A stretch of DNA of 64,000 bases from Obrimoposthia wandeli (Eukaryota): contig CDROCS010001674.1 in NCBI GenBank assembly GCA_977020255.1, forward strand, positions 248,001 through 312,000, given 5' to 3'. Below, piece by piece: positions 23,504-63,647 of this stretch (positions within the stretch are counted from its first letter, which is position 1; every line of letters starts with the position of its first letter). Both the position numbers and the translations under genes were made by a program. Below the pieces are notes generated by a model. The model saw only the letters and a program-made list of their open reading frames with translations, was not told the DNA's origin and ran no database searches.

Positions 23504-23599
23504 GTTCGTTTTCGCTTATAGTTTTTAACCAGCTCATACAGAATCTGTTTGATTCCCTATCATATAGGCATAAATATGCCACTTTATGTCAGGTTATAA

Positions 23600-23650: not shown

Positions 23651-23736
23651 GTGCGGTTCTACGTATTTTTGAGTGATAAAAACAAAAAAAAGGACCATAA
23701 GATCCTTTTTTTAGATTCATAACGAGCTTTAACGTA

Positions 23737-47183: not shown

Positions 47184-47981
47184 TCAATTTTTAAGGCTAC
47201 ATCTGCCGCCTTTTATGTAGCGAATATTGCGATATTCAGCGGTGATAGGCACACTGTTTTGATCAAACTCGCCAGCCCATCCCGATATTTCACTGTCTGT
47301 TGCCCATATATTCGCCATTATTCGTAATGGGCTATCTGTACTTGTTGGCGTAGGATCTGATGATGTATTCTTAACTTTGAATACAAGTTTTCCATCAATA
47401 AACCATTGAATCGCACGTTTAGTCCATTTAATACCATAACGGTGGAATTCTTCAGAGGCATCAAAATCTAAGAAAATGAGCCTTGCATGGTCATTGCTGT
47501 AATTATCATCGTTTGTCCAATAGTTAATTTGTAGCAGGTTGGTATTGTCACCTAAAAATTCGATATCGATTTCATTATGTTTACCATTACTTGCCTCCGT
47601 TTTATCGTACGGACCTGCAAATAAGAAAAAGGAGGTAATCACACCATCTGCCGCGGCGGGCTTTATTTCGGCTTCAAAGCATCCGTAGTTATAAAAATCA
47701 TGGCTACGTAATTCCCCTGATTGAAAAGTAAGATTTTGCGGATCTGTTGAATCTGGCGTATTAGAAAGTGTAATTGCCATTCCGTTTGTTGAAAAAGAAA
47801 CAGCTTCAGATTCCCAGCGATTAATAAAAGGAAAACCATTACTCCAGCCATCAGCTAGCCACCATAACTGCTCATTCATATTCGTTAGCGGATCATCAAA
47901 GCTAGTTGCTGAAAATGACGGTGTAGCCACTAAAAGAGCGATAAATAAAGGCATTGTGCGAAATGAAGAAGAGGTGGTCAT
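47184..47981 (-). CDS. Secreted GH16 beta-glucanase (licheninase/ExoK-like)
   Basis: Signal peptide ending SFS-A, intact EIDIEF catalytic motif, 'GVITSFF', 'FHRYGIKW', 'IMANIW'; start chosen at MTTSSS (ORF track gives 48062). Confidence 0.9.
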   Translation of the reverse strand: MTTSSSFRTMPLFIALLVATPSFSATSFDDPLTNMNEQLWWLADGWSNGFPFINRWESEAVSFSTNGMAITLSNTPDSTDPQNLTFQSGELRSHDFYNYGCFEAEIKPAAADGVITSFFLFAGPYDKTEASNGKHNEIDIEFLGDNTNLLQINYWTNDDNYSNDHARLIFLDFDASEEFHRYGIKWTKRAIQWFIDGKLVFKVKNTSSDPTPTSTDSPLRIMANIWATDSEISGWAGEFDQNSVPITAEYRNIRYIKGGRCSLKN

Positions 47982-48104
47982 AGAGTCATACTTTTTAATG
48001 AGTGAAGTACAAAAGTGTAGCAGTGAGATTAAACGATGAAGGTTGAACTGTGTGCCAAACATAAGACAAAAATGTATTAAATGGTATTTATCTGAGAATG
48101 AAGA

Positions 48105-49550
48105 CTAGTTAGTTGTCGTGGGGGTTAAAATAGCCTTATTTCCCCGGGCTTTGTACCAAAGTGACACTAAAATCAAAGAATTTGTATTGATGTTGTACGA
48201 TGCATTCGGTGCGTTATTTTTATAAACACCAGCAGGAATAACACGAGAACTTCGACTGTTCTCAATAACCGCTTGCCTTAAAATATCACTAAACGCATCG
48301 TCAAAAATAACGCTCAGACCAAATGCAATTTTATTGCTAAATACTTGTGGGTTTTCGATGGGTTTACCACCAGCAGAGGTGCTTAGCCAGCTTTTGCCAT
48401 AGAAATAGATATTGTTATAAGCAAACCATGGGCTTTTACTTATCGCATCTTCAGCGAAGATCCATAATTTTCCTGATTGACTATATTGTTGTATATGCAA
48501 TTGATAAATAACGTTTAGTTGATTCCACCATGCTGTACTTTCACCGAGTTCAATTGCTTGCAATACATAGGGGTCTGTGGTGAAAAAAGGGACATTACGG
48601 GTGTCGATATATAATGGGATATTATCGACATTGACGATATCGATGTGATCGCGAGCAAAGCTGTTCGTTACATCTAACCCCGCTAACTGATATCCCTGCG
48701 CTGCGTATTGTAAATAGCCTAATCGCCCTTCCTGACGGTAAAACTCATCATTCTTTTGATACCGCGTACCATAAAGCGTTTTTTCGTGCACAGCGCGAGA
48801 CAGTAACCAACGTTTGGTTATTATATTCACCTGTTTTTGAAAGTGTGGTTTTTGTTGTGTTGTTATTTCAAGCCAGATGAGCAGCCGACCAATATCAAGT
48901 GCCGACCATCCGTTGCCATTTCTATTATTTTTTTTACCCGAAGGTAGCCCCGTTTCTGTGTTGTATTCACGGTTAGGTAGCTGGTCATTATAAAGTGGCA
49001 TTGTTGTTAGGGTGGTTAAAATACGGTTTAGTTTAGCATCTGCCTGTACGGTGGTGATCAGTTCGAGTGCTTCTAGTGCAAGGGTAGCACCGATGTCGCT
49101 GCCAATATCCCACATGGTGGTATGATGATAGCCTTGGACTGAATCAGTTAACCCCGTTTGTTTATTTTCATTTCGTTTAAAATAATAACTCGCCTTTTTA
49201 GCAAGTAGCCATTCTTGCCGTGATATTTTGTCGAGAGACAATACTATCTCAGTGCTTACTTTTGATGAGTCCAATGTACGAAAAAGAGAATTCTCACTCA
49301 TATCTAGTCGATTGTTTTTCGATTGGACGTCGTTTTCAATGAGAATAGCAGGAGCAATAGCGCGTCTTTGGAACGTAATTTTTTCTGGTGGTTGTTGGTT
49401 ATTTTGTTGAGATACACTTCGTCCGCCATAGAAACTGGGTTGTTCAGGTTCTTTGCTCTCTTCATTGCTATAGGCGAAAAAACTCATAACAAACAATAAG
49501 CTTGTAACATAAGTACGGCATATTGTTCGTTGTGTTTTATGGCATAGCAT
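48105..49550 (-). CDS. DUF3131-domain secreted protein (putative beta-glucan-active (alpha/alpha)6 enzyme)
   Basis: Signal peptide ending AYS-N; 'YF..N....TGL..SV.GY...TMWDIGS', 'LPNREY', 'GWSALDIGRLL', 'EGRLGY'. Confidence 0.8.
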   Translation of the reverse strand: MLCHKTQRTICRTYVTSLLFVMSFFAYSNEESKEPEQPSFYGGRSVSQQNNQQPPEKITFQRRAIAPAILIENDVQSKNNRLDMSENSLFRTLDSSKVSTEIVLSLDKISRQEWLLAKKASYYFKRNENKQTGLTDSVQGYHHTTMWDIGSDIGATLALEALELITTVQADAKLNRILTTLTTMPLYNDQLPNREYNTETGLPSGKKNNRNGNGWSALDIGRLLIWLEITTQQKPHFQKQVNIITKRWLLSRAVHEKTLYGTRYQKNDEFYRQEGRLGYLQYAAQGYQLAGLDVTNSFARDHIDIVNVDNIPLYIDTRNVPFFTTDPYVLQAIELGESTAWWNQLNVIYQLHIQQYSQSGKLWIFAEDAISKSPWFAYNNIYFYGKSWLSTSAGGKPIENPQVFSNKIAFGLSVIFDDAFSDILRQAVIENSRSSRVIPAGVYKNNAPNASYNINTNSLILVSLWYKARGNKAILTPTTTN

Positions 49551-50589: not shown

Positions 50590-52413
50590 ATGGAGCAAGG
50601 GATTTTGCTAGTTGATAAATTGAAGCAGGCGTTTACCGCGAGTAAGAAAGATATCGCTTTTGTCGGGCTATTTAGCTTGGCCATTAACTTTCTTGTTTTA
50701 ACACTACCACTTTACAGCCTGCAATTATTTGATCGTGTGTTAAGCAGTTCAAGTTTAGATACATTGTTTGCTTTACTCACCATTGCTGTTGTATTGCTAA
50801 CAGCACAAGCCATTATTGAGCATCTTCGTACACAGTTACTTCAAAAATCGGGTTTAAAGCTCGATGTATCACTCAGCCCTTCTTTATTAGCAGATAGTAT
50901 TCGTCAATCATCTAAGCAAAATCGTATAAGTAAGCAAGGTTTACAAGATCTTGCTGAGTTACGTAACTTTTTAGTCTCACCTTCAACCTCTGCCATTTTT
51001 GATATCCCATGGATTCCGATTTTTTTAATCATCCTATTTATGCTTCATCCTTATATTGGTGCAATAGCATTAGTTGGCAGTATTATATTTTCTGTTCTCG
51101 CTATTCTAATGATGTATGCGGCAAGAAAGCCGAGTGAGTATTCTAAAAGTTTAGGTATGAAAACTAATATGGAGTTGAATGATTACCTACGAAATGCCCC
51201 TACATTAAGGGCGATGGGTATGGCTGATAGCATTGGTTTGATTTGGAATAAGCGCAACAGAGAGCTGTTAAAACTGCAGTGGTTAGTCAATTCAAGAACA
51301 GGGCAATTGCTCGCCATTAGTCGTTATTTTAGAACGCTACTGCAAGTGGTTATTCTAACTGTGGGGGTAATGTTAGCGTTAGAACAGCAGCTTGGTACGG
51401 GCGCTATCATTGCGAGTTCCATTATTATGGCAAGAGTATTATCACCCTTTGAGCAAGCTGTTGCGGGTTGGAAATCATGGTATAGCGCGTATTTAGCTTA
51501 TAAACGCTTAAGTCATTATGAAGGCGAAGTGTCGAGTGAAATGAAAACAGCATTACCAGAGCCCAAAGGTGAGTTGCTGCTAAAGAATGTTGGTCTGCGG
51601 TTTGATAGCCAAAAAGAACCAGTACTACAAAATATTAGCTTCAAATTGGGTGCGGGTAATGCGTTGGCTATTATGGGTAACAGTGGCTCGGGTAAATCAA
51701 CATTAGCATCGATGATTATGGGGATTCATCGACCGTCGATGGGATCAATCAAGATCGATGGCGCGGCAATTGAGCTATGGCCTGAAGAACAGTTTGGTCG
51801 CCATATCGGTTTTTTACCGCAAGAGGTGGGGTTACTAACGGGTACGGTAGCTGAGAATATTTGTCGATTTAGTCAGGCTCCAGCAGAGAAAATCATTCAC
51901 GCTGCTCGCCTAGCTTGTATTCACGAACTGATCATATCTTTACCTAATGGGTATGACACTTATTTAGGCGAAGGTGGATTACAGCTATCGGGTGGTCAGA
52001 AGCAACGCATCGGTTTAGCGCGGGCTATTTTCTCAAACCCAAGCTTACTTATTTTAGATGAACCGAATTCTAATTTGGATCCTGAAGGGGAAGTCGCATT
52101 AGCGATTGTTCTTCAATACTGCAAAGAGAATGCAATTACAGTGGTGATGATTAGCCATCGCCCTGGTTTTTTACGTCAAATGGATTGGGTTATTGTATTA
52201 AAAGACGGCAAAATTGAAAAAGCGGGCACATGCGATAAGTTCTTAGGCGCAATGTCTGAAGTAGAAAAAGAGCCGTTACAAACCGTCGCTAATAATAACC
52301 CTAAAACCACTAATTCAAATTGTTCTACTCCTAGAGCATCAAGCTCTGAGCAATCATCATTAAAAAAGACAGTAGCCAAACAAGCAGAAGCAATGGGAGA
52401 TAACCGTGGATGA
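50590..52413 (+). CDS. Type I secretion ABC transporter, PrtD/AprD type (no C39 domain)
   Basis: 'LYSLQLFDRVLSS.S..TL', Walker A GNSGSGKST, 'LSGGQKQRIGLARA', 'LDEPNSNLD'. Confidence 0.93.
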   Translation: MEQGILLVDKLKQAFTASKKDIAFVGLFSLAINFLVLTLPLYSLQLFDRVLSSSSLDTLFALLTIAVVLLTAQAIIEHLRTQLLQKSGLKLDVSLSPSLLADSIRQSSKQNRISKQGLQDLAELRNFLVSPSTSAIFDIPWIPIFLIILFMLHPYIGAIALVGSIIFSVLAILMMYAARKPSEYSKSLGMKTNMELNDYLRNAPTLRAMGMADSIGLIWNKRNRELLKLQWLVNSRTGQLLAISRYFRTLLQVVILTVGVMLALEQQLGTGAIIASSIIMARVLSPFEQAVAGWKSWYSAYLAYKRLSHYEGEVSSEMKTALPEPKGELLLKNVGLRFDSQKEPVLQNISFKLGAGNALAIMGNSGSGKSTLASMIMGIHRPSMGSIKIDGAAIELWPEEQFGRHIGFLPQEVGLLTGTVAENICRFSQAPAEKIIHAARLACIHELIISLPNGYDTYLGEGGLQLSGGQKQRIGLARAIFSNPSLLILDEPNSNLDPEGEVALAIVLQYCKENAITVVMISHRPGFLRQMDWVIVLKDGKIEKAGTCDKFLGAMSEVEKEPLQTVANNNPKTTNSNCSTPRASSSEQSSLKKTVAKQAEAMGDNRG

Positions 52414-53704
52414 ATCAGAATTTGATACGAATCGATTAATCTGGGTTGGGTGTATTTTCATTCTTCTCACTGTGGGTGGCTTTATTTTATGGGCAACAAC
52501 CGCAAAGCTTAGTTCTGCGTCGGTTGCTTCTGGTACGTTAGTCGTGGAGTCACAGCGTAAGAAGGTACAACACCTTGAAGGTGGTTGGGTAAAAGCGATT
52601 TATGTGTCGGAAGGTCAAAAAGTGGAAGTGGGCGATGTATTAGTCGAACTTGCAAACAGTCGAGCTGAATCCGATTTTCGGCGCTTAATATTACGTGCTG
52701 TTTCTCTGCAAGCACAACACGACCGATTATCGACTGAATTGAGTAACCGAAAAGATCTTGTATGGAGTAATCTTTTTTTTGATGAAATTGAAGAAGGGCA
52801 GTTGGCCAATATTATTAATAGCCAACAGCTACAATATCAACAGTCTGTGCTTCATGAAGAGCTTCGAGAAGGCCAATATCAACAACGAAAAGTGCTATTA
52901 CAAGAACAAATCAGAGGGACGGGTTTTCAGCTTAGTGCGATTCAACGTCAGTTAGATTTGGCTAACGAAGAAATACAGATGACGACAAGTTTACTTAAAA
53001 AAGGCTTTGTTTCAAAAACACGGGTACTTCAAATTAAACGCTATCATGCGGGTATTGATGCTCAAAAAGCAGAACTAAAAGGCGAAAGTGAAGTATTAGC
53101 TCAACAGCTATTGTCTTTAGAACAAGATTACAAGTCTGAGAGTATTGAATTTAAACAGGGTCTTACCGCTCAAATTGAACAATCAGAAAAAGAGCTGCGT
53201 GATGTTAAGCAAGCGCTTAAATCGGCAAGAGATGTGCGTGAAAGAGTCAAAATTCGCAGTGAACATACTGGAACTGTGGTTGGATTAAACATTCATAGTA
53301 TCGGGGGTGTGGTTAATGCGGGTGATGTCATTATGGAAATAGTACCAGATAGCGATGCATTGATCGTTGAAGCTGTGGTTAAACCAGAAGACATTGATGT
53401 GGTCCGCCAAGGCTTGGCAGCAAAAGTACGATTGAGTGCTTACAATATCCGCCGTACGCCACCCGTTCAAGGTGAAGTCATTTATGTTGCAGCAGACAGA
53501 CTTCAACCTCGAACAGATAATAGCCCTACAGGTTATGTAGTCAAAATTAAGCTAGATCCAAATGAAATTAAGATGTTAGATAATATCGAACTGTACCCAG
53601 GCATGCCTACTGAAGTGTTTATTTTATTAGAAGATAAAACACTATGGGATTATTTAACGGCACCATTATTTAGTTCTTATTATCGAGCATTTAGAGAGTC
53701 ATGA
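52406..53704 (+). CDS. Type I secretion membrane-fusion protein (HlyD/PrtE family)
   Basis: 'VQHLEGGWV', long coiled coil, 'LYPGMPTEV'; 8-bp overlap with the ABC gene. Confidence 0.93.
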   Translation: MDESEFDTNRLIWVGCIFILLTVGGFILWATTAKLSSASVASGTLVVESQRKKVQHLEGGWVKAIYVSEGQKVEVGDVLVELANSRAESDFRRLILRAVSLQAQHDRLSTELSNRKDLVWSNLFFDEIEEGQLANIINSQQLQYQQSVLHEELREGQYQQRKVLLQEQIRGTGFQLSAIQRQLDLANEEIQMTTSLLKKGFVSKTRVLQIKRYHAGIDAQKAELKGESEVLAQQLLSLEQDYKSESIEFKQGLTAQIEQSEKELRDVKQALKSARDVRERVKIRSEHTGTVVGLNIHSIGGVVNAGDVIMEIVPDSDALIVEAVVKPEDIDVVRQGLAAKVRLSAYNIRRTPPVQGEVIYVAADRLQPRTDNSPTGYVVKIKLDPNEIKMLDNIELYPGMPTEVFILLEDKTLWDYLTAPLFSSYYRAFRES

Positions 53705-53777: not shown

Positions 53778-54029
53778 GTGCCTCTCATGGTGTTTTGGTT
53801 AAGTTTTTATGCGTTCTTCTTTATTGTTTCTGTGTGTATTGGTTACCATAAAGGCAATTTAATCGCAGGTGTGTTATTGGGTTATGTTCTTGGTCCTATT
53901 GGGGCTGTTTTGATGTATATGAGTAAAGACCGTAAGCATATCGAATGCCCTTCATGCCATGCTAATATTCATAAAAACTCTTATTTTTGCCCTGAATGTC
54001 GATGTAAGGTGATGAATGCTGTGGCTTAA
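53778..54029 (+). CDS. Small membrane protein with a C-terminal zinc ribbon
   Basis: Two hydrophobic segments with 'LGPIG', then CPSC-x10-CPEC. Confidence 0.7.
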   Translation: MPLMVFWLSFYAFFFIVSVCIGYHKGNLIAGVLLGYVLGPIGAVLMYMSKDRKHIECPSCHANIHKNSYFCPECRCKVMNAVA

Positions 54030-54060
54030 AAATCCGCCTTAACGAGTATTTTGATACAAC

Positions 54061-54088
54061 AAAAAAGCCACTCGAACGAGTGGCTTTT
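54061..54088. terminator. Bidirectional terminator between the T1SS operon and the RTX gene
   Basis: aaaagccactcg-aa-cgagtggctttt. Confidence 0.85.
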
Positions 54089-54124
54089 GTTTATTAGGCG
54101 GTGTTTTGTATTAGAAAGGAATGG

Positions 54125-57100
54125 TTAGCTTATTTCTGAACCATTAAAGTTAATCTTGTCGGTGTCACTATCACTCCAGATCGTGACTTCGTTCCCATCA
54201 CCATTACTGAACGTGTAACCAAATAATCCATCAGTATCAATATTACTGGCTTCGTAGGCCTCACGAAGCTCATTGGATAAGTCGGCGTTGTTATCTGATA
54301 GCTCCCAACCAAACCCTTCAAGTTGCAGTGAGTCTGCTCCTGAGCACACGAATTGTCCGTTGGTTGCACTGTCGGTTTCGTTTAACAGTACTTTATCTAA
54401 AGCAACTTTCAGCTGAGCATCATTAGCATTAACTACAACCCCTTCAATTTGTTGGAGTGCAGATTGCGTCATGTCAATAATTTGCCCATTGTTGTCGCTA
54501 CCAACCGCTAATAGGTCGAACCCATCACCGCCATTAATATTGGTGTCATTCTTATCGAAGATTAATGTATCGTTACCGCTGCCCGCAAATAATTGGTCAA
54601 TGCCAGCACCACCATCCAGTACATCATCACCGCTTTGACCAAAGAGTAAATCATCGCCTGAATCACCATGAAGGGTATCGTTACCGATGCCGCCATCAAG
54701 GCTATCGTCATTGTCTCCGCCAGCGAGTGTGTCGTTATCACCACCGCCTGATAATGTATCGTCACCACTACCACCGGTTAATGAGTCATTCCCAGAACCG
54801 CCGTACAAGGTATCTGCTCCAGTATCTCCAGATAGAGAATCGCTCCCTGTTTCACCATAAAGAACATCATCACCGGAACCACCTTTTAAGGTGTCATTTC
54901 CTTCGCCAGCCCATAAGGTATCATTACCAGAATCACCTTTAAGCGTATCGTTACCAATATCACCTTTTAAGATATCGTTACCTGAACCGCCTGAAAGGAT
55001 GTCATTACCAGCTCCGCCATCCAGCTGATCGTCATTATTTTGGCCGTAGAGCTTGTCATCACCGTCGTCGCCAGTAAGTACATCGTTACCGCTACCACCG
55101 TATAACTTGTCGTTGTCAGCACCACCTGAAAGCGTATCATCACCAGATCCCGCGCTCAGTGTATCAGCACCTTCACCGCCAGATAATAAGTCTGAACCTG
55201 AACCCGATGTGAGTTTATCGTTGCCTTCGCCACCGTCTAACGTGTTGTTACCATCGCCAGCAAAAAGTGTGTCAGAGCCTAACCCTCCAACAAGAATATC
55301 ATTCCCTTTACCTGCGGTTACTGTATCGTTGCCATCGCCGCCATCTAAGGTATTGTCACCAGAATCGGCATTGAGTATGTCGTTACCCTCACCACCACTT
55401 AAGCGGTCATTTCCTGACCCTGCTGTTAGAGTATCATCGCCATCACCGCCTTCGAGGGTGTCATTACCGTCGAAGCCTTCTAGTCGGTCATTACCTGCAT
55501 CACCCCGCAGAATATCATCAGCAGCAGCTCCGTAAAGCACATCGTTATCGTCGCCACCTTCAAGGGTGTTGTTACCACTATTTGCATGTAATTCATCGTT
55601 GCCAGCACCGCCTAATAGTGTGTCATCACCTTCACCAGCAAAGAGTTTGTCTGCACCGTCACCACCCAGTAATCGGTCGTTACCGTCGCCGCCCAGCAGA
55701 ACGTCGTCGCCTAATTCACCTGAAAGTGTATCGTTGCCTGCTCCTCCTTCGATGGTATCGATACCTGCGCCACCAGAAAGGTTATCATTGCCTTCTGCAC
55801 CGCTTAGTTTGTCTGAACCAGAACCCGCAATAACGGTATCATTGCCACTGCCACCATAAAGGGTGTTATCACCTTCCCCAAGGTCAATGGTGTTATTACC
55901 TGCTTCACCATAGACGGTGTCATTGCCGTCGCCAGCAATAATTGTATCGTTACCTGCACCTGCATAGAGGGCATCATCGCCAGCGCCACCTTGAATTGTA
56001 TCTTGGTCTGCGCCGCCGTATAACGTATCGTTTTGGCTGCTACCGATTAATGTATCATCACCCGCGCCACCAAATATCTGATGGCTCCCTGTTGCCGCTG
56101 CGATTAGCGTATCATCACCGCCTTCACCAAGAAGGGTGTCTTGGCCATCATCAGTAATCGTATCGTTACCATCACCGCCAGCTAAGAAGTCGTACCCATC
56201 ACCACCGATTAATGTATCATCGCCAGCACCACCAAATAATGCATCGTTGCCATCGCCACCATCGAGTAAATCGCTGCCTGAACCTGCATCGATATGATCA
56301 TCGCCAAGCCCTGCGGTAATTGTGTCATCGCCGTCGCCGGCAAATATCTGGTCGTTGCCATCGCCAGCATCAATGGTATCGCTGTTAATACCACCATAAA
56401 TGTTATCAGCACCTGATCCTGCGGTGATTTGGTTGCTACCCGCTTCGCCATAAATTGTGTCGTCGCCATCACCCGCATTAATAACATCATTACCGCTACC
56501 AGCGTAAATGGTGTCATTACCTGCGTTCGACGTAATTGTATCATTGCCTGAACCACCGCCAAGAATGTCAGCTTCGTCGGCACTCACAAGAGTATCGTTA
56601 CCAGCATCACCGTAAAGCTGGCTAATACCTAAGTCGCCATCAAGGCTGTCATTACCATCACCACCTGCGAGAAGGTCATCTCCTTGTCCGCCGAGTAAGG
56701 TATCATTACCAACACCTCCGACTAAGATGTCATTACCATCACCGCCCTCTAAGCTATCGTCACCAGAACCGCCAAGTAAGGTATCAGCTCCTTCAGCGCC
56801 TTGCAGGTTGTCATCACCGCTATGACCTTCGAGTAAATCATCACCTTGACCTGCGAGTAAGGTATCGTTATCGGCACCGCCGTAAAGGGCATCGTTTTCG
56901 TTAGACCCAGTTAAAGTATCCTCACCTTGACCGCCGAAGAGTGAACTGCTGTTTGTACCTGCGTTAATGGTGTCGTTGCCGTTTTCGCCATAAAGCGCGT
57001 TATTACCTTGCTCACCATGAATAATATCGTCACCAGCGCCAGCATAAACGGTATCGACACCGTCACCAGCGTAGATTGTATCTATACCTGCTCCGGCGAA

Positions 57101-58852
57101 TACTTCATCGTTGCCTGTACCAGCTTGAATTAAATCATTGCCGCTGCCGGTGAATACATCATCATCACCAATGCCTGACGTGATTGTATTGTCACCATCA
57201 CCTGCATAAATCACATCATGCCCATCACCAGCATCAATGGTGTCGTTACCTTCGGCACTGTAAATCGTGTCGTTATCTGTGCCGGTATTTATGGTGTTAT
57301 TACCCGCACCTGCAAAAACGGTATCGTGTCCTGCGCCGGTATTGATTGTGTCGTTACCGGTATCGGTATAAACCGTATCGTCGCCATCATCCGCGGTTAC
57401 AGTGTTATTGCCGGTTTCACCATAAATGGTATCGTTACCTGTGCCGCCATCAATAAAGTCATCACCTTCACCTGCATAGATGAAATCATCACCCGCGCCT
57501 GCATTTATAATGTCATTGCCTTCATTAGCATGAAGGATATCGGAGCCGTCACCACCCTCTAATACATCATTGCCTGCGCCACCAAAGAGTTGGTCACTAT
57601 CAGCGCCCCCGACAAGTTGGTCGTTGCCTAGGCCGCCATAAACCATATCGGCACCAGCCCCACCCGTAATGATATCGTCACCAGCTTCTCCAAACAGGTT
57701 ATCGTTACCATCACCACCTGATAGATTGTCGTTACCATCACCACCGAGTAGCAAATCATTGTCTGCGCCGCCTTCAATAATATCAGCGCCATCACCGCCT
57801 AAAATGAAATCGTCACCAGCACCACCAGTGATGATATCGTCACCAGCGTCACCATGAATTTCATCTTTTCCTTCGCCACCAGATAAAGTGTCAATGCCTA
57901 AGCCACCGAATAAACTGTCGTTACCAGTGCCACCTGTAAGGGTGTCATTGCCATCATCACCGAGTAATATGTCGTTACCTGCACCACCATCGATAATATC
58001 GTCGCCCAACTCACCTAAAAGGGTGTCATCACCATCGTCACCGAATAATGTATCGTTTCCATCGCTACCTAAGAGGGTATCGTTATCAGAACCGCCATAA
58101 AGGGTATCGTCACCGTTACCACCTACGAGTACATCGTCGCCTTCATCGCCATAAAGAGTATCGTTGTTGATATCTCCGTCGATAAAGTCATTCCCCGTAC
58201 CACCGTAAATAGTATCTGAACCTTGTTGTCCAAATAGGCTATCGTTACCCGCTCCACCTGAAATTGTGTCGTTGTAGATGTTATTCGCGATAAATTCTAC
58301 TGATTCTATATCGGTAATATCTTTTCCATCGGGACCAACAAGTGTGAATGAAATTAGCTGTTCAGCACCGACTTCATCAGCAGTAAAAGCGATATCAACA
58401 ATAACATCACCATTTTCATCAATTGTCGCAGGTATCGTTTTTATAACGTTACCATCTTGGTCTGTTAACTCGACGGTGATTGCCGTGAATGCGGTATTAA
58501 CTGAAAATTTTGTTGTTATTGATCCTGATTGATCAACGACATAGTTACCTAAGCGAGCACTGTGAGAAATTTGTTCTTGTTCATCATCAGAAGAAGCGGT
58601 GTATTTATAAACAGTTTGTGCATCTCCCCAGTTGTCATTCGTTGCCGGTTTTGCTGGAGGTTCTGTACCATACTCAACATCCCCTAAAATGGTATCTGAA
58701 CCATCACCACCAGATAACAGATCACTACCTTCACCACCGACTACAAAATCATCTCCAGCTTTTGCATCGACTTCATCATTACCAGATCGCGTATTGATGT
58801 TATCGTCTTGAGTTGTCCCGTCCACTTTGTCGTTGAATTTCGTTCCTTCCAT
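54125..58852 (-). CDS. Giant RTX-repeat Ca2+-binding protein (1575 aa), probable T1SS substrate
   Basis: No Sec signal; ~6 N-terminal nonapeptides, a ~135-aa unique domain, ~137 contiguous GGxGxDxLx repeats, and a C-terminal non-repeat secretion domain; GAGG RBS. Confidence 0.93.
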   Translation of the reverse strand: MEGTKFNDKVDGTTQDDNINTRSGNDEVDAKAGDDFVVGGEGSDLLSGGDGSDTILGDVEYGTEPPAKPATNDNWGDAQTVYKYTASSDDEQEQISHSARLGNYVVDQSGSITTKFSVNTAFTAITVELTDQDGNVIKTIPATIDENGDVIVDIAFTADEVGAEQLISFTLVGPDGKDITDIESVEFIANNIYNDTISGGAGNDSLFGQQGSDTIYGGTGNDFIDGDINNDTLYGDEGDDVLVGGNGDDTLYGGSDNDTLLGSDGNDTLFGDDGDDTLLGELGDDIIDGGAGNDILLGDDGNDTLTGGTGNDSLFGGLGIDTLSGGEGKDEIHGDAGDDIITGGAGDDFILGGDGADIIEGGADNDLLLGGDGNDNLSGGDGNDNLFGEAGDDIITGGAGADMVYGGLGNDQLVGGADSDQLFGGAGNDVLEGGDGSDILHANEGNDIINAGAGDDFIYAGEGDDFIDGGTGNDTIYGETGNNTVTADDGDDTVYTDTGNDTINTGAGHDTVFAGAGNNTINTGTDNDTIYSAEGNDTIDAGDGHDVIYAGDGDNTITSGIGDDDVFTGSGNDLIQAGTGNDEVFAGAGIDTIYAGDGVDTVYAGAGDDIIHGEQGNNALYGENGNDTINAGTNSSSLFGGQGEDTLTGSNENDALYGGADNDTLLAGQGDDLLEGHSGDDNLQGAEGADTLLGGSGDDSLEGGDGNDILVGGVGNDTLLGGQGDDLLAGGDGNDSLDGDLGISQLYGDAGNDTLVSADEADILGGGSGNDTITSNAGNDTIYAGSGNDVINAGDGDDTIYGEAGSNQITAGSGADNIYGGINSDTIDAGDGNDQIFAGDGDDTITAGLGDDHIDAGSGSDLLDGGDGNDALFGGAGDDTLIGGDGYDFLAGGDGNDTITDDGQDTLLGEGGDDTLIAAATGSHQIFGGAGDDTLIGSSQNDTLYGGADQDTIQGGAGDDALYAGAGNDTIIAGDGNDTVYGEAGNNTIDLGEGDNTLYGGSGNDTVIAGSGSDKLSGAEGNDNLSGGAGIDTIEGGAGNDTLSGELGDDVLLGGDGNDRLLGGDGADKLFAGEGDDTLLGGAGNDELHANSGNNTLEGGDDNDVLYGAAADDILRGDAGNDRLEGFDGNDTLEGGDGDDTLTAGSGNDRLSGGEGNDILNADSGDNTLDGGDGNDTVTAGKGNDILVGGLGSDTLFAGDGNNTLDGGEGNDKLTSGSGSDLLSGGEGADTLSAGSGDDTLSGGADNDKLYGGSGNDVLTGDDGDDKLYGQNNDDQLDGGAGNDILSGGSGNDILKGDIGNDTLKGDSGNDTLWAGEGNDTLKGGSGDDVLYGETGSDSLSGDTGADTLYGGSGNDSLTGGSGDDTLSGGGDNDTLAGGDNDDSLDGGIGNDTLHGDSGDDLLFGQSGDDVLDGGAGIDQLFAGSGNDTLIFDKNDTNINGGDGFDLLAVGSDNNGQIIDMTQSALQQIEGVVVNANDAQLKVALDKVLLNETDSATNGQFVCSGADSLQLEGFGWELSDNNADLSNELREAYEASNIDTDGLFGYTFSNGDGNEVTIWSDSDTDKINFNGSEIS
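54560..58258 (-). repeat. 27-bp-period RTX nonapeptide array (~137 units, residues 199-1431)
   Basis: Parsed by hand; the span equals 137 x 27 bp exactly, with one 8-residue unit compensated by one 10-residue unit. Confidence 0.9.
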
Positions 58853-58926
58853 TTGAACCTCTCAATATTGGTTAATACGCCGTCTATGTGATGGCAGTCG
58901 ATATGTGATAATCATGTTCATAAACT

Positions 58927-58945
58927 TAGGCATTAAGAATGCCAA
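58927..58945 (-). promoter_or_regulatory. Possible sigma-54 promoter or palindromic operator upstream of the RTX gene
   Basis: Minus strand TTGGCATTCTTAATGCC gives GG-N10-GC; it is also a GGCATT-N3-AATGCC palindrome, ~75 bp before the ATG. Confidence 0.4.
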
Positions 58946-59211
58946 AAATTAACGATTTTTTAAAAAAAACCAAATAAGCATCAAGCTAAACATCACTAAA
59001 ACAAAGTGTTTAGGTATTAATTTTTTGTTTTTATTGGTTTTTTGTGCTTTTTGTTTTCATCTTTATGAGTGCTGTATAATAAAAGCACTTAATGAAGGGT
59101 AGTGTTTTTTCTGGGCATTGCCACTGAGTATGTATGCACTTATATGCTTATTTTCATTTTGAGAGGATAAATTGAAAAAAGAAGACTGTAGGATATTTTT
59201 AAAATGCGAAA

Positions 59212-60204
59212 TCAGAAGGTAAAAGAGTATGAAATAGAGAACGCACCATCTATAAATCGGCCTGTATCTTCTCCTCGATCTGATGAATTCCAGCGGTTAC
59301 CTGAGTAGTTATTATATTGGATGGTAATTGTGCCAGGGTGCCAATCGAAGTAACCAAATCCATAGGTGAAATCAGGATTCCAAGGCTGCTTTTGGCTGCT
59401 ATCAAAATAATAAAATGCAGTCGCATTGACATACCAATTGCCGAATATTGAATACTTACAGCCTAAACTCAGGGTTTTGTGGCCTTGTTTATAGGTTGAT
59501 GATGCAAGATCGAAGTATTCAGGGGTGAAGTTAAAATCTGTTTGACAGCCTATGGCTCCTTCCTCAGTAAAAGACAGCCAATCAATAAACGGTTTAGTAA
59601 TAGGAAACTTCCAACCCAAAGACCATGTACCCTGATCAAAGTTCGTGACGGGTTGCTCTTCTGTTGCTTTAAAGCGATTACCGCCGTAGTTGGCATACAT
59701 CAAGCTGAAGGTATAAGGACGCCAATCACTGTAGCCAAAAACATAGGTGAAATCAGGGTTCCACGCTTGTTGCTGATCACCGTCTATGTAGTAGTACAGT
59801 GTACTTGCGACAAACCAATTTCCTAATATTGTGTATTTTAACGATAACGTCGCGGTTGCGTTATTGTTAGTCGGCCCAGTCGTAGCATTGGCGGGCAGGT
59901 TAGCTGCAGATGTTTGAAGCATAGGATAACCAAGCGCAAAATTACCGCTTAAACCGTGTAACCATGAACGGTCTTCATTATCGTCATCCCATTCTTCAAA
60001 TGGCAAATCAAAAGAACTGGATACACCTTTCCAAATTAAATCGGATTCAGCTGGCTTAGGCTCTTCATCCAAGCTAATTGCTTTTGTAAAGTTGGGTGAT
60101 ATCGGTTTGGGGGCTTGTTTAGCCGTTTCAGCCATATACTCACTCGATACCGCAATAGATGAACATAGCAAACAGGGAAAATATAGAAATAATAATTTAT
60201 GCAT
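59212..60204 (-). CDS. Predicted outer-membrane beta-barrel protein with an internal 57-aa duplication
   Basis: Signal peptide, aromatic amphipathic strands, C-terminal FSISYSFTF (BAM-type terminal Phe), two copies of 'WNPDFTY.FGY.DW.P'. Confidence 0.75.
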   Translation of the reverse strand: MHKLLFLYFPCLLCSSIAVSSEYMAETAKQAPKPISPNFTKAISLDEEPKPAESDLIWKGVSSSFDLPFEEWDDDNEDRSWLHGLSGNFALGYPMLQTSAANLPANATTGPTNNNATATLSLKYTILGNWFVASTLYYYIDGDQQQAWNPDFTYVFGYSDWRPYTFSLMYANYGGNRFKATEEQPVTNFDQGTWSLGWKFPITKPFIDWLSFTEEGAIGCQTDFNFTPEYFDLASSTYKQGHKTLSLGCKYSIFGNWYVNATAFYYFDSSQKQPWNPDFTYGFGYFDWHPGTITIQYNNYSGNRWNSSDRGEDTGRFIDGAFSISYSFTF

Positions 60205-60441: not shown

Positions 60442-61701
60442 ATGAGAGACATTTTACTGGTTGATGACAATCGAACAATGCTGATGTTCATGGAAAAAAT
60501 GCTGACAAAGCGTGGTTTCAATGTCATTACAGCAAATGACGGTTTGCAAGCGCTGGAAGTGTTGAAAGTCAATCCACACATACAGTTTGTACTCAGTGAT
60601 TGGATGATGCCTGAAATGGACGGCATAGAATTGTGCACACGTTTAAAGTCAGGTAATTACTCTCGGTATATTTTTTTCGTTTTGTTATCAGGTAAAGATG
60701 ATCAAGCTTCGATAATCAATGGTATCAATGCCGGGGCTGATGATTTTGTTGTAAAAGATACCCATGTTGATGAGCTTGATGCACGTATTAGAGCAGGGTT
60801 CAGAACATTAGCGCTACATAATGAAATAACAGAGAAAAATAATGAGCTTGATGGTGCTTATGCGACCATTCAGAAAGATTTAGAGTCTGCAGGTGAACTT
60901 GTTCGTCGCTTATTACCATCCCAAAAGAAACTGACAGGTGTAGAGCTCAGTTATGTATCTATACCCAGTGCTCAGATTGGTGGTGATATGTTGGGCTATA
61001 TGCAGCTTGATGAAGATCATGTGGCGTTTTATTTACTTGATGTCGCAGGGCATGGTGTGTCGTCTGCCTTGATGTCATTTTCGGTTCAGCAAAGTATTTC
61101 AACGAATTCGGGTAAAGGCTCAATCGTTAAAATGCAAACATCAGAGCCGCCGTATTATGAAATTACCTCACCCAAAGATGTACTCAAGCAACTCAATGAT
61201 ATTTATTTAAGCGATGATGAAAACCTATTGTATTTCACCATGGTTTACTCGGTCCTGAATGTGAAAACGGGGCTTTTATCATTTTCGAGTGCAGGGCATC
61301 CGCCCTTAGTTTGGTTACATGCTGAATTAAATGATGCTGAATTTATTGGTCAAGATAGTTTTGTTGTCGGAGCGTTTGATTTTGTTGAGTTCCAAACGGC
61401 AGAAATTCAATTGGAACCGGGCGATAAAATTTGGATATATTCAGATGGGCTTACAGAAGCAGAACATGAAACGAAACAATTTTCAGAAGAAGGGTTGAGA
61501 CAAGCCGTTATCGATTTAAATCATCACTCCACTGCCGTTCAAACAGAATTATTGGTTAATCGAGTCAGAGATTGGCAAAAGTCAGAACAATTTGATGATG
61601 ATGTTAGCGTACTGGCAGTAGAGTGGACAGGTTATTCAGAAGGGGAACAAACATGCAATACGAAGTTATCAACAAGGGTCAATGCACAGTTCTTCAAATA
61701 A
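60442..61701 (+). CDS. Response-regulator receiver fused to a PP2C/SpoIIE phosphatase (RsbU/RsbP-like)
   Basis: REC 'LLVDD' and 'SDWMMPEMDG'; PP2C 'GGD', 'LLDVAGHG', 'YSDGLTE', 'DDVS'. Confidence 0.93.
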   Translation: MRDILLVDDNRTMLMFMEKMLTKRGFNVITANDGLQALEVLKVNPHIQFVLSDWMMPEMDGIELCTRLKSGNYSRYIFFVLLSGKDDQASIINGINAGADDFVVKDTHVDELDARIRAGFRTLALHNEITEKNNELDGAYATIQKDLESAGELVRRLLPSQKKLTGVELSYVSIPSAQIGGDMLGYMQLDEDHVAFYLLDVAGHGVSSALMSFSVQQSISTNSGKGSIVKMQTSEPPYYEITSPKDVLKQLNDIYLSDDENLLYFTMVYSVLNVKTGLLSFSSAGHPPLVWLHAELNDAEFIGQDSFVVGAFDFVEFQTAEIQLEPGDKIWIYSDGLTEAEHETKQFSEEGLRQAVIDLNHHSTAVQTELLVNRVRDWQKSEQFDDDVSVLAVEWTGYSEGEQTCNTKLSTRVNAQFFK

Positions 61702-61985
61702 ATGAAGGGCGGTTTGACGCTAAATTAGCACCGAGTTTTCGTCAAGAAATTGAATCTTTAGCGGGTAGCATTGATTCACATCTTGTGCTGGATTTGACGA
61801 ACGTCCGCTTTATGGATAGCAGTGGTCTTGGTGCTGTTATGGGCGTATATAAAATGTTAAAGGGTAAAAAAATTAGTGTTGTTAACCCGCAGCGAGCTGT
61901 AAGAGAGCTCTTGAAGTTGACTCGAATGGACAAATTGATTTTGAGTTATGAAACGGTTGAAGACGCTGTTGCGACCACAGTATAA
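61653..61985 (+). CDS. STAS anti-anti-sigma-factor-like protein (RsbV/SpoIIAA type)
   Basis: 'LDLTNVRFMDSSGLG' with the phosphoacceptor Ser; GGGGA RBS supports a start at 61653 (49-bp overlap with the PP2C gene). Confidence 0.92.
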   Translation: MQYEVINKGQCTVLQINEGRFDAKLAPSFRQEIESLAGSIDSHLVLDLTNVRFMDSSGLGAVMGVYKMLKGKKISVVNPQRAVRELLKLTRMDKLILSYETVEDAVATTV

Positions 61986-61996
61986 GGAATAGCTTA

Positions 61997-63145
61997 ATGA
62001 AAGGGATGATTCTGGCTGCGGGCAAAGGGACGCGAGTAAAGCCAATAACACAGACGATACCTAAACCAATGATTCCAATTCTCGGAAAGCCAGTGATGGA
62101 ATCAATGATCCAACTCTTTGCCGCGCACGGTATAGATCAAATTGTTGTAAATACCAGCCATCTGGCTGAAGTTATAGAAAACTACTTTAGTGATGGGCAT
62201 CATTTTAATGTTCAGCTTTCTTATTCCTACGAAGGGGAAATGAAAGGCGGTAAATTTATCAGTAAAGCATTAGGTTCTGCTGGTGGAATGAAAAAAATTC
62301 AAGATTTTTCCGGTTTCTTTGATGAAACATTTGTTGTTGTATGTGGTGATGCTTGGATCGATCTTGATCTCACTGAGGCGGTAAGACGTCACAAAGAGTT
62401 AGGTGGTATTGCAACGATTATTTCGAAAGAAGTTGAATTAAGTGAAGTCAGTAAATATGGCGTAGTTGTTACCGACGATAACGGTAGAATTACTTCTTTT
62501 CAAGAAAAGCCAAGTGCTGAAGAAGCCCTGTCGACACAGATTAACAGCGGTATTTATATTTTCGAGCCTGCAATTTTTGATTTTATTCCAAAGGAAGAAG
62601 AATTCGATATTGGTAGCCAGTTATTCCCATTATTGGTTGAGAAAGATATCACCTTCTATGCGACTAAGATGGATTTCCAGTGGTTAGATGTTGGTAATAT
62701 CAGTGATATTTGGGGTGTTACCAGCGAAATATTACATGGTAAAGTGCCGGGCTATCCTGTTCCTGGCACCCAAGTTAAACCTGGCGTGTGGGTGGGTATC
62801 AATACGGTATTTGATCTCGACAAATGTAATATTACCCCTCCTGTCATTATCAGTAGCGGTTGCGAAATTCAAAATGGTGCGACAATTACTGGTCCTGCCT
62901 TAATAGGTTCAAACTGTAAAATTGAATCTGAAGCGGTGATCAGCCAAAGCATAGTGTGTGACTATATCCATATCTCTGGTTCTGCTTATATTGATAATAA
63001 AACTGTTTTTGGTGATTACTTCATTAGTCATGATGGTTTTACTCAATCTTTAATTGAAATGGATGCCATTCATATACTGAAAGATAGGCGTGTAACGCAA
63101 TCTGTAGTCGTGAACAGAACAAACGTTCCAGCGTTTACACCTTAA
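61997..63145 (+). CDS. NDP-sugar pyrophosphorylase, CugP-like (non-GalU UDP-glucose pyrophosphorylase), with C-terminal left-handed beta-helix
   Basis: 'ILAAGKGTRVKPIT.TIPKPMIPIL', 'SYSYEG', 'KALGSAGGMKKIQDFSGFFDETFVVVCGDA.IDLDL', 'FQEKP'; matches cyanobacterial CugP as I recall it. Confidence 0.8.
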   Translation: MKGMILAAGKGTRVKPITQTIPKPMIPILGKPVMESMIQLFAAHGIDQIVVNTSHLAEVIENYFSDGHHFNVQLSYSYEGEMKGGKFISKALGSAGGMKKIQDFSGFFDETFVVVCGDAWIDLDLTEAVRRHKELGGIATIISKEVELSEVSKYGVVVTDDNGRITSFQEKPSAEEALSTQINSGIYIFEPAIFDFIPKEEEFDIGSQLFPLLVEKDITFYATKMDFQWLDVGNISDIWGVTSEILHGKVPGYPVPGTQVKPGVWVGINTVFDLDKCNITPPVIISSGCEIQNGATITGPALIGSNCKIESEAVISQSIVCDYIHISGSAYIDNKTVFGDYFISHDGFTQSLIEMDAIHILKDRRVTQSVVVNRTNVPAFTP

Positions 63146-63194
63146 ATATTTAAAGACTAGGTTTTTTATTCATTTATTTGTAAGGAACTGCCCG

Positions 63195-63647
63195 ATGGAA
63201 ACGGTTAAGTACGAATTCAAACAGCAATATAAGAGTTCCCTTGAAGTGTCTAGAAATATTGCTGATGATGTTAAGGCGTATTGGGCTGATATTGGTTTAG
63301 GACCAGAAGTTATAGACCAAATCGAATTATGCTTAGTAGAAATGGTGAATAACGCTTACGAGCACGCTTATCACTCTGAAGATGGTTGTCCTATAGAGCT
63401 TACCTCTTATCTTAATGACAAGAATGAGTTAGTAACTGAAATCTCTGATTATGGACAATCCATGTCTAAGGATGAATTTACGAAAGCGGTTAATAATGAA
63501 TTTATAGAACCGGATCCTGATGATCCTGAAACATGGGTAACATCAGGTCGTGGTTTTATTATTGTCGTTCAGTTAACCGATAACCTTGAATATGTAAACT
63601 TAGGCGATAAAAATACATTCAGGTTATACAAAAATACGAATGGCTAA
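63195..63647 (+). CDS. RsbW/SpoIIAB-like Ser kinase (anti-sigma-factor type HATPase)
   Basis: N-box 'EMVNNAYEHA', 'ISDYG', 'SGRG'. Confidence 0.9.
   Translation: METVKYEFKQQYKSSLEVSRNIADDVKAYWADIGLGPEVIDQIELCLVEMVNNAYEHAYHSEDGCPIELTSYLNDKNELVTEISDYGQSMSKDEFTKAVNNEFIEPDPDDPETWVTSGRGFIIVVQLTDNLEYVNLGDKNTFRLYKNTNG

Follow-up and report, generated by a model that had tools for sequence, protein, structure and literature searches.

The gene at positions 54125..58852 on the minus strand of the window (the whole 64,000-nucleotide stretch of DNA that was analysed, to which all positions below refer) encodes a 1575-aa protein made almost entirely of RTX nonapeptides. This protein is probably a cargo-free substrate of the PrtD-type type I secretion system encoded next to it, and would fold with calcium into a rod of ~33 nm with a structural role at the cell surface or in the biofilm matrix. 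The encoding bacterium is Photobacterium-like. The protein is an extreme new example of an already known kind, and it does not define a new class of system.

The RTX gene and its product

The coding sequence is complete. A ribosome-binding site, GAGAGG, lies 5' of the ATG, and a bidirectional hairpin terminator (54063..54088) separates the gene from the transporter genes, which are convergent to it. The product has a mass of 156 kDa, a pI of 4.05 and one Cys, and both the acidic pI and the single Cys match the general character of RTX proteins (PMC3034196). PF00353 (HemolysinCabind) was the only Pfam family found, in 55 stretches with an E-value of 3e-290. RTX-type repeats account for 78% of the protein, or 87% when other RTX-like units are included. 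The initial annotation had read this reading frame as 1575 aa of nearly pure RTX repeat, with few non-repeat parts and with repeats already at the extreme N-terminus, and the anatomy bears it out. Six degenerate RTX units occupy residues 3-56 (58685..58846, minus strand), where AlphaFold2 gave low confidence (pLDDT 47-58). The non-repeat parts are a family-specific domain of ~140 aa (residues 59-198; 58259..58678, minus strand), which we call the head domain, and a C-terminal region of 144 aa (residues 1432-1575; 54128..54559, minus strand), presumed to comprise a beta-roll cap and an uncleaved type I secretion signal. Between the two lie 137 RTX nonapeptides in a single register (residues 199-1431; 54560..58258, minus strand), predicted to form a continuous beta-roll. 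The maximum of the Kyte-Doolittle profile (19-residue mean) was 1.02, in a window within the head domain, indicating that there is no hydrophobic segment.

Register and conservation of the repeat array

Arranged with nine residues per row starting at residue 199, the sequence stays in register in 137 of 137 rows, up to residue 1431. Position 8, the U of the RTX definition GGxGxDxUx (PMC3034196), is L, I or V in 137/137 units; D fills position 6 in 122/137 and G fills position 4 in 117/137. The autocorrelation of Gly reached 246 at lag 9, compared with 1-89 for lags 1-8. The array had been described as uninterrupted. As far as the register goes this holds across all 137 rows; it does not hold for residues 901-927 (56072..56152, minus strand), directly after unit 78, where irregular units of 8, 9 and 10 residues compensate one another. 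Because their net length is 27 residues, the register is kept past this segment.

Photobacterium profundum and an Aliivibrio each have a full-length orthologue, and another is encoded on a second bacterial contig (C506) of the same assembly. The four orthologues contain 121 (Aliivibrio), 137, 137 and 141 units and their units align one for one; the arrays differ by three indels (108, 36 and 36 aa), all of them whole 18-aa turns. Relative to the P. profundum orthologue, dN/dS was ~0.08 overall and 0.05-0.09 in each of the three parts of the protein, and the gene is under purifying selection. In an independent food-metagenome run, contigs tiled the entire gene collinearly with zero indels within the ORF. 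None of the RNA runs contained the gene. Since these contigs tile the gene and three orthologues share its architecture, the array is real, and we rejected an assembly artefact on the same grounds. Recent tandem amplification was likewise rejected: DNA repeats are merely short patches of 24, 27 and 54 nt (72-79% matches), and the units align one-to-one across species.

We also placed the array among other RTX proteins, using a sample confined to proteins of 866-2756 aa. Repeat-rich giant RTX proteins were common in it, with in-register runs to 105 units and up to 200 units in total (n=248). The rarity implied by the earlier statement that RTX toxins and enzymes typically carry a few to a few dozen repeats was overstated, as other families also have in-register runs, of 74-105 units. 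Nor did the idea of an unprecedented repeat number survive, given that ~170-200 Ca sites were predicted earlier for larger RTX proteins (PMC3034196) and that the sample itself extends to 200 units. By a strict unit score, the RTX coverage of the protein was 0.83, the highest of the 252 proteins scored.

Predicted fold of the array

We modelled the protein with AlphaFold2 in two overlapping parts, residues 1-1000 and 851-1575, from a three-sequence alignment and with no Ca2+ in the model. AlphaFold2 is prone to regular solenoids when repeats are regular. The models placed a short strand at each nine residues across the whole array, with pLDDT of 80-98 and pTM of 0.61 and 0.73, and predicted one continuous beta-roll running through the irregular segment, not several separate short rolls. 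Foldseek matched these models to solved RTX beta-rolls only (CyaA, RsaA, region IV of MpAFP, lipases and serralysins), and the top match was the CyaA RTX domain 7usl_C with an E-value of 2e-9. By prediction, then, the protein combines an RTX beta-roll fold with its acidic pI. The length of the rod, like its straightness, was computed, not read from coordinates, the length as 68.5 turns x 4.8 A = ~33 nm, and the rigid rod of ~68 coils and ~30 nm proposed in the initial annotation is supported in silico to this extent. If the prediction holds, the array would be a single domain of ~1230 residues and ~33 nm with roughly 130 Ca2+ sites, far beyond the beta-roll segments of ~100-340 aligned columns among the solved-structure matches.

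The irregular segment raises the question whether the array is one rod or a structure of two arms or multiple segments, with rolls of 78 and 56 units hinged or cut at residues 901-927. We regard such a division as unlikely, if worth keeping in view. In three orthologues the irregularity follows unit 78; in Aliivibrio, where 12 upstream units are missing, it follows unit 66. Across the four orthologues the segment is the best-conserved stretch of the array, with 83% of its variable repeat positions invariant against an array mean of 23%, and pLDDT falls to ~84 there. However, in both models the roll runs on across the segment, with strand spacings of 9, 9, 8, 9, 10 and 9 and a pLDDT of at least 84 (84-91 for the block). 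A net length of 27 residues leaves the register intact, and on either side of the segment the aromatic face described below stays in phase. Instead of being a silent bulge, the hyper-conserved segment might serve as a hinge or as a site of processing or binding, which speaks against the single rod that we prefer.

One face of the predicted roll is rich in aromatic residues

Aromatic residues pointing outward make up 27% on one face of the predicted roll versus 8-13% on the other, in 4/4 orthologues. One sheet carries a conserved ladder of Tyr, Phe and Leu, and the opposite sheet is rich in Thr, Ser and Asp. Conservation of position 9 is higher on the aromatic face. In 15 other long arrays the asymmetry between faces was much weaker, at most ~13 points and usually below 10, so that aromatic content is similar on both faces of the long-run arrays checked, unlike here. 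In engineered proteins, a hydrophobic beta-roll face leads to calcium-dependent cross-linking and hydrogels (PMC6473919).

The head domain and the C-terminal region

The first half of the head domain is probably a disordered linker. Its residues ~111-189 have six or seven beta-strands and may adopt an Ig-like sandwich. The AlphaFold2 pLDDT of the head domain was 34-67. The profile FlgD_ig matched with an E-value of 3.6e-4, which fell below threshold. When the head-domain alignment was compared by hhalign with Big_6, Big_9, PKD, Cadherin-like and SdrD_B, the probability was at most 39%, and "Ig-like" is therefore a weak lead. A phmmer search with the head domain against 1.84 billion representatives returned 15 matches, five of them fragments of the same family and the remainder weak and from Ig-like repeat arrays. 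The proteins P0121-P0124 and P0130 are metagenomic fragments. An ESM Atlas search with the head domain gave no usable match. A word search with residues 62-196 in the band of 866-2756 aa gave no match, and was uninformative, as it missed the orthologues too; a word search with residues 1-200 was dominated by RTX proteins that matched the N-terminal units.

The C-terminal region had no relative in Pfam or PDB, and PDB sequence searches with both the head and the C-terminal regions gave nothing meaningful. It is 95% identical to that of the P. profundum orthologue and 53-66% identical to those of the two more distant orthologues; within the assembly it is common only to the orthologue on contig C506. 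Its AlphaFold2 pLDDT was 37-68. In the family, PDB-sequence and hhalign searches, no known enzyme or toxin was identified in the unique domain, in agreement with the absence of recognisable cargo claimed at the outset. No toxin or enzyme module was found in the protein, and its head and C-terminal regions may possess a hidden activity.

Secretion genes and neighbourhood

Directly downstream of the RTX gene, and convergent to it, lie two genes of a type I secretion system, an arrangement kept in 4/4 loci. The first (50590..52413, plus strand; Pfam ABC_tran and ABC_membrane) encodes an ABC permease/ATPase of the PrtD type, which has no C39-like domain at its N-terminus (for the transporter classes see PMC8277102). 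It scored 612 bits against TIGR01842 (cut-off 510), compared with 271 bits against the HlyB model TIGR01846 (cut-off 726), to which it aligned only from model position 136. The second (52406..53704, plus strand) encodes a HlyD-family periplasmic adaptor of type I secretion (TIGR01843, 339 bits, cut-off 209).

Directly upstream of the RTX gene, on the same strand in 4/4 loci, is a gene for a 330-aa outer-membrane beta-barrel protein (59212..60204, minus strand) with a signal peptide, an internal duplication, a C-terminal Phe and a weak PLA1 match. Its nearest ESM Atlas clusters bear the name outer membrane beta-barrel protein. We infer that the barrel may be a partner of the RTX protein. The flanking genes include glycan-related ones (GH16, DUF3131 and a nucleotidyl transferase; in relatives GH2/GH9 or GT2), and it is only through this neighbourhood that the RTX protein is tied to glycan genes. 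A partner-switching module is also near the locus.

The barrel gene bears on the possibility that the protein is a cell-anchored fibre or adhesin. The rod would then be held by the barrel or by its N-terminal end in the secretion channel, for instance, with its head or aromatic face turned towards a surface, a host or a partner cell. The constant position of the barrel gene agrees with this, as does the small beta-rich domain near the N-terminus, the part that is last out of the cell. Array length is kept at 121-141 units, and adhesins form a large, known class among RTX proteins (PMC3034196, PMC12077191). On the other hand, searches detected no families of retention modules, LapG sites or Ig-repeat extenders, the C39-like domain that typifies exporters of the LapB/HlyB type is missing from the ABC transporter, and the head domain is without a confirmed ligand-binding fold. 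Specifically, a retention module of the LapA/MpIBP type or a LapG family had no Pfam/NCBIfam match, and the place at the N-terminus is taken by six RTX units; the sole LapD-like score belonged to an unrelated gene (23737-24924), in its GGDEF part. An Ig-like or cadherin-like extender array is absent, with one possible Ig-like domain at most (~111-189). We therefore rejected a LapA-type two-step RTX adhesin, for want of retention module, LapG and extender array, and we consider anchoring in some other form possible while doubting it.

Comparison with known RTX systems

The preferred reading, a secreted structural fibre, which the initial annotation had offered beside an S-layer-like component, is plausible by analogy with oscillin and CabA (PMC3034196, PMC4584020) and also fits the conserved aromatic face. 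Oscillin of Phormidium uncinatum has 646 aa and 46 repeats, is rod-shaped and forms surface fibrils (PMC3034196). Like the present protein it consists of almost only nonapeptide repeats with no enzymatic or toxic cargo, and it binds calcium (PMC3034196). Unlike it, oscillin has three times fewer repeats, is cyanobacterial and glycosylated, and is linked to gliding motility. The likeness is one of description. We know of no head domain or partner barrel in oscillin.

CabA/MfpA of Vibrio vulnificus and V. parahaemolyticus has a pI of 3.95, is unfolded without Ca2+, and folds and multimerises with Ca2+ (PMC4584020). A dedicated type I system exports CabA, which builds matrix only together with exopolysaccharide (PMC4584020). 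The evidence that the present protein may share the Ca2+-dependent folding and multimerisation, the exopolysaccharide-dependent matrix assembly and the c-di-GMP control of CabA/MfpA is indirect, namely its aromatic face and the glycan and regulatory genes nearby. Shared with CabA are the origin in Vibrionaceae, the acidic, calcium-binding type and the lack of a catalytic domain. However, CabA has 190 aa and forms one operon with its transporter, whereas the protein studied here has 1575 aa, is encoded convergently to the transporter genes, and additionally has the 137-unit roll, the head domain and the conserved barrel gene.

RTX S-layer proteins (RsaA of Caulobacter and SlaA of Serratia; PMC3034196; PDB 6p5t) are encoded alongside PrtD/RsaD-type systems, as here, and have a structural surface role with calcium-dependent assembly (PMC3034196). 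They consist of a large non-RTX lattice part and few C-terminal RTX repeats (five in RsaA), whereas here the repeats span residues 199-1431 of 1575. An S-layer architecture of the RsaA type was rejected, the large lattice-forming or anchoring non-RTX part not being present. Very long in-register runs also occur in P0206, in the G8-domain family P0140, P0149, P0179 and P0189, and in the 74-unit family P0003 and P0136. They have uninterrupted runs of 74-105 units and carry no functional annotation in the database match tables. In contrast to the present protein they have additional recognisable domains (nuclease, G8, peptidase and others) or more than one separate block, and their coverage is at most 0.68 versus 0.81-0.83 here.

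The RTX domain of CyaA (PDB 7usl, 6sus, 5cxl; PMC9120197, PMC10511787) shows the same nonapeptide beta-roll, and undergoes C-terminal capping and Ca2+-driven templated folding from C to N (PMC9120197, PMC10511787). CyaA differs in having ~40 repeats in five linker-separated blocks, acylation, pore-forming and enzyme domains, and a transporter with a C39-like domain. Pfam and NCBIfam searches of the protein and of the ORFs from ~33.8 kb to the window end revealed no HlyC/RtxC acyltransferase gene or acylated segment. A pore-forming RTX cytolysin of the HlyA, CyaA or LtxA type was rejected, with no hydrophobic pore domain, no acyltransferase and no HlyB-type transporter. Two parts of the initial annotation held up here: no pore-forming, enzyme, extender-array or LapA-type module appeared in the Pfam/NCBIfam scans, and its view that the protein is not a toxin agrees with the lack of a hydrophobic domain, the lack of an acyltransferase in the scanned neighbours and the PrtD-type transporter without a C39-like domain.

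An antagonistic protein of another sort, bacteriocin-like or membrane-active, whose active part would be the unrecognised head or C-terminal region, strikes us as highly improbable. Many-repeat RTX bacteriocins of unexplained mechanism exist, NodO makes channels without an obvious hydrophobic domain (both PMC3034196), and two regions of ~140 aa here are without identified relatives. However, the protein lacks a pore domain of hydrophobic or amphipathic character, and repeats make up most of it by either count given above. In its neighbourhood we recognised neither an acyltransferase nor a small gene of the immunity type; the genes there are glycan genes and regulatory genes of the biofilm type.

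Ice binding or calcium storage can be all but dismissed: Foldseek did list 3p4g, a beta-helical antifreeze domain that depends on Ca2+, position 7 is Thr-rich on one face (37/68 units) and each molecule would offer ~130 Ca2+ sites, but the 3p4g match (TM-score 0.16-0.35, rmsd 11-13 A) reflects a shared Ca-bound solenoid fold, the Thr/Asx row is not regular with position 3 a mixture of A, D, S, E and T, the nearest named organism is a deep-sea Photobacterium, and calcium is in large excess in seawater, so that storage has no obvious value. Seawater contains roughly 10 mM Ca2+, which makes the calcium sink of the initial annotation unlikely; calcium is therefore better taken as a folding cofactor.

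Proposed mechanism and implications

In the structural-fibre model, the RTX protein would be threaded out unfolded through the type I system with its C-terminus leading. Once in calcium-rich medium, the C-terminal region would cap the first turns, and the 137 nonapeptides would then stack turn upon turn, binding roughly one Ca2+ each. The product would be a right-handed beta-roll of ~68 turns, a stiff acidic rod of ~33 nm x 2-3 nm with the small head domain near its N-terminal end. Through the aromatic face, such rods may associate laterally with each other or with polysaccharide in a calcium-dependent manner, with an outcome that would resemble the fibrils of oscillin and the matrix protein CabA of Vibrio.

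A bolder version can be imagined, and we rate its chances as low. Here the family would be a natural calcium-gated, self-assembling nanorod of fixed length: the ladder would zip laterally or along a beta-glucan from the neighbouring genes, the barrel would hold one end, and the 8+9+10 bulge would be a docking site or hinge. The rod would then be a spacer or strut of ~33 nm setting the architecture of protein-glucan layers under partner-switch control.

Repeat-dominated RTX proteins without assigned function are abundant. The protein described here could be a model for vectorial calcium-driven folding in type I secretion, free of the block-and-linker complications of CyaA. It is also a potential biomaterial, a ready-made calcium-switchable rod, as engineered beta-rolls with a hydrophobic face already form hydrogels (PMC6473919). 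For the Vibrionaceae, a structural role would extend the CabA-type idea of a calcium-folded matrix scaffold to a far larger protein.

The repeat array and its predicted fold

The RTX protein (1575 residues by ORF translation) is encoded at 54125-58852 (-), with a GAGAGG ribosome-binding site ahead of its ATG and a bidirectional hairpin terminator past its stop (54063-54088). HemolysinCabind was its sole Pfam family, found in 55 stretches (E 3e-290). Throughout residues 199-1431, all 137 nine-residue rows kept one register: position 8 was Leu, Ile or Val in 137/137 units, position 6 was Asp in 122/137 and position 4 was Gly in 117/137. Gly-Gly autocorrelation was 246 at lag 9 versus 1-89 at lags 1-8. 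Six additional degenerate units occupied residues 3-56, and the non-repeat stretches were residues 59-198 (the head domain) and 1432-1575 (the C-terminal region). The description in the initial annotation thus stands, with its word "uninterrupted" needing one qualification: at residues 901-927, the sole irregularity, units of 8, 9 and 10 residues occur, and their sum restores the register. The protein is strongly acidic (pI 4.05; 338 Asp+Glu versus 29 Lys+Arg), with one Cys and no hydrophobic segment.

The initial annotation had named an AlphaFold prediction as a check. With three-orthologue alignments, AlphaFold2 was run on two overlapping pieces, residues 1-1000 (mean pLDDT 81.3, pTM 0.61, array pLDDT 80-96) and 851-1575 (mean pLDDT 83.5, pTM 0.73, array pLDDT 90-98). 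Both models predicted one continuous roll, with a strand of three to four residues in every nine. Across residues 901-927 the strand spacing was 9, 9, 8, 9, 10, 9 and the block pLDDT 84-91, so that the roll is predicted to carry on unbroken with a small bulge. On these models, the array probably forms a single continuous beta-roll. Model confidence was low outside the array, with pLDDT of 47-58 in the N-terminal units, 34-67 in the head domain and 37-68 in the C-terminal region. All Foldseek matches in the PDB were RTX beta-rolls. The best was the CyaA RTX domain (7usl_C, E 2e-9); the others were RsaA, the Ca-dependent antifreeze solenoid 3p4g, and family I.3 lipases and serralysins. Locally, the closest superposition was on CyaA block V (3.7 Å over 113 columns). 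Parallel strands are spaced 4.8 Å apart. The predicted rod length of ~33 nm is the arithmetic product of 68.5 turns and this spacing.

An old and stably inherited array

The RTX gene showed zero differences from contigs of the probable source run, and independent food-metagenome contigs covered it entirely and collinearly at ~97-99% identity, with no indels in the ORF. Near-identical copies (window 54000-59300) occurred in metagenome contigs from food (58% of sampled words) and from an invertebrate gut, and in those of a run on another organism, suggesting a wide spread of the carrier bacterium among samples of marine animals or seafood. None of the RNA runs contained the gene.

When species genomes were pattern-scanned with the head domain, two orthologous loci emerged, in Photobacterium profundum ATCC BAA-1252 (1573 aa, 90% identical, 137 units) and Aliivibrio sp. 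1S175 (1445 aa, 64% identical, 121 units). The window contig (C1674) belongs to a 1.35-Gb assembly of 6912 contigs; the assembly is presumably eukaryotic and the contig evidently bacterial. A fourth, full-length orthologue lies on another bacterial contig of the same assembly (C506, 3.78 Mb; C506:508449-513311, or L009:450-5312 in locus coordinates; 1620 aa, 141 units, 67% identical, synteny kept), so the assembly contains at least two Vibrionaceae-like genomes.

The four arrays aligned unit by unit. Their only indels were of 108, 36 and 36 residues, all multiples of 18 and hence whole turns of a roll with two repeats per turn, a pattern resting on three events with a chance expectation of ~1 in 8. 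Between the window and P. profundum, dN/dS was 0.087 in the N-terminal part, 0.076 in the array and 0.046 in the C-terminal part. Periodicity in the array DNA was confined to short patches (24, 27 or 54 nt) with 72-79% matches. Taken together, the alignment, dN/dS and sparse periodicity indicate an old, stably inherited array. Recent amplification was rejected, given the low identity of the short patches and the alignment of units across orthologues.

Two unlike faces and a conserved irregular segment

The two sheets of the predicted roll are unlike each other. Position 9 was aromatic or His in 37/69 units on one face versus 11/68 on the other, formed by alternate units. All four orthologues carried more outward aromatic residues on one face (27% versus 8-13%), and position 9 was better conserved there (0.57-0.96 versus 0.35-0.82). 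Fifteen other long RTX arrays had a far smaller face difference, at most ~13 points. Since beta-rolls engineered to carry a hydrophobic face undergo calcium-dependent cross-linking into hydrogels (PMC6473919), the aromatic face is, by analogy, a plausible physical basis of self-association.

No window of the array was more conserved than residues 901-927 (56072-56152 (-)), where 83% of normally variable positions were invariant against a mean of 23%; the segment follows unit 78 in three orthologues. Such conservation argues for some function, candidates being a hinge, a docking site or a processing site.

Secretion genes and neighbourhood

Two type I secretion genes, for an ABC exporter and an HlyD-family adaptor, are convergent with the RTX gene. 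The 607-aa exporter passed the PrtD model with a score of 612 bits; its alignment to the HlyB model began only at position 136, and it therefore lacks a C39-like domain. RTX toxins are served by transporters with this domain, while PrtD, LipB and HasD have none (PMC8277102); RsaA is exported by an adjoining ABC and adaptor pair (PMC3034196). Almost certainly, the RTX protein would be secreted by this type I system. A putative 83-aa ORF with weak zinc-ribbon matches (53778-54029 (+)) separates the adaptor gene from the terminator.

Immediately upstream of the RTX gene, on the same strand in 4/4 loci, lies a gene for an outer-membrane barrel protein of 330 aa (59212-60204 (-); 330-346 aa across loci). 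Its counterparts are at L001:8454-9479 (P. profundum), L002:8616-9656 and L010:391-1401. The protein carries a signal peptide, ends in Phe and is internally duplicated, with two copies of a motif around NPDFTY; a family search gave a weak PLA1 match and no named family. Neighbouring genes encode a response-regulator PP2C phosphatase, a STAS protein, a nucleotidyl transferase and an RsbW-like kinase, the transferase gene sitting within this RsbU/V/W-like partner-switching module. GH16 and DUF3131 genes lie near the locus in the window, and GH2 and GH9, or GT2, with more DUF3131, in relatives. By gene neighbourhood, the locus fits a surface or matrix polysaccharide setting. Glycan-related genes flank it in all relatives (window 47184-49550 and 60442-63647; L001:1111-5035; L002:1502-2884, 7214-8491 and 18457-20016). 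Unrelated to the RTX finding, glpABC (anaerobic glycerol-3-phosphate dehydrogenase) and then a gene for a GGDEF diguanylate cyclase that scores as SiaD-like occupy 19264-24924 (-).

The head domain and the C-terminal region

Six or seven strands were predicted at residues 111-189 of the head domain, and its match to FlgD Ig-like fell below threshold (20.9 bits for a cut-off of 27, E 3.6e-4). An exhaustive phmmer search of 1.84 billion representatives returned just 15 proteins: five contig-end fragments of the same N-terminal layout (MEGTK start, RTX units, head domain, array start) and ten weak matches to Ig-like repeat arrays (Big_6, Big_9, PKD, Cadherin-like, SdrD_B). Profile-profile probability against such repeats was at most 39%, and neither a PDB sequence search nor the ESM Atlas yielded relatives. 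These results point to a family-specific domain, perhaps a single beta-sandwich. No enzyme or toxin sign emerged from Pfam, phmmer, profile-profile, PDB sequence or ESM Atlas searches, in keeping with the earlier view that the protein carries no recognisable cargo.

The C-terminal 144 residues had no family match and no hit in a PDB sequence search; within the assembly, they were common only to the C506 orthologue. As CyaA block V needs a C-terminal cap to fold (PMC6473919, PMC9120197), this region may by analogy be both cap and secretion signal.

Comparison with other RTX proteins

A word search with the array matched more than 6700 proteins (866-2756 aa, E < 1e-50). For comparison, a single unit rule was applied to 248 large RTX proteins of this size range, from the best 120 matches per search. 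Their longest in-register run had a median of 23 units; among the matches listed, the longest were 105 (a nuclease-bearing protein), 93-99 (a G8-domain family) and 74 (another family). The RTX orthologues reached 78 strictly, 121-141 by hand across the irregularity, and 125-141 by the unit rule, which includes an RTX-like row past the array. Total units rose to 200 in the sample versus 130-150 in the orthologues, and RTX coverage was at most 0.68 versus 0.81-0.83. By handle, the G8-domain family comprises P0140, P0149, P0161, P0179 and P0189 (83-99 in-register units), the nuclease-bearing protein is P0206 (105), and P0003, P0136, P0143, P0176 and others have exactly 74 units at the C-terminal end; the database match tables held no functional annotation for these groups.

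A 2010 survey put the predicted Ca sites of two larger RTX proteins at 170-200 and described oscillin, a rod-shaped fibril protein of 646 residues with 46 repeats (PMC3034196). In Vibrio vulnificus, a dedicated type I system serves CabA, a matrix protein of 190 aa that binds calcium, folds and multimerises in response to Ca2+, and requires exopolysaccharide (PMC4584020). Together with the long runs elsewhere, these precedents make the RTX protein an extreme case of a kind already known rather than the first of a new one.

A proposed structural rod and its alternatives

Repeat anatomy, the predicted continuous roll, the adjoining PrtD-type secretion genes, conservation with purifying selection, and face asymmetry form the established part. 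An anchored, adhesin-like fibre is possible though improbable. Similarly doubtful is a two-arm structure, hinged or processed at the conserved irregular segment, where the models keep the roll unbroken; it is compatible with the functional readings. An antagonistic protein is very unlikely, and an ice-binding or calcium-store role, despite the antifreeze match, is the least credible.

We somewhat favour type I export of a single calcium-folded rod with a structural role. The protein would leave the cell unfolded, C-terminus leading. The C-terminal region would then cap the roll, and calcium would drive folding turn by turn, as shown for CyaA (PMC9120197, PMC10511787), giving a rod of ~33 nm with ~130 Ca2+. 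The aromatic face may mediate lateral association or polysaccharide binding, and the rod would be structural, at the cell surface or in the matrix.
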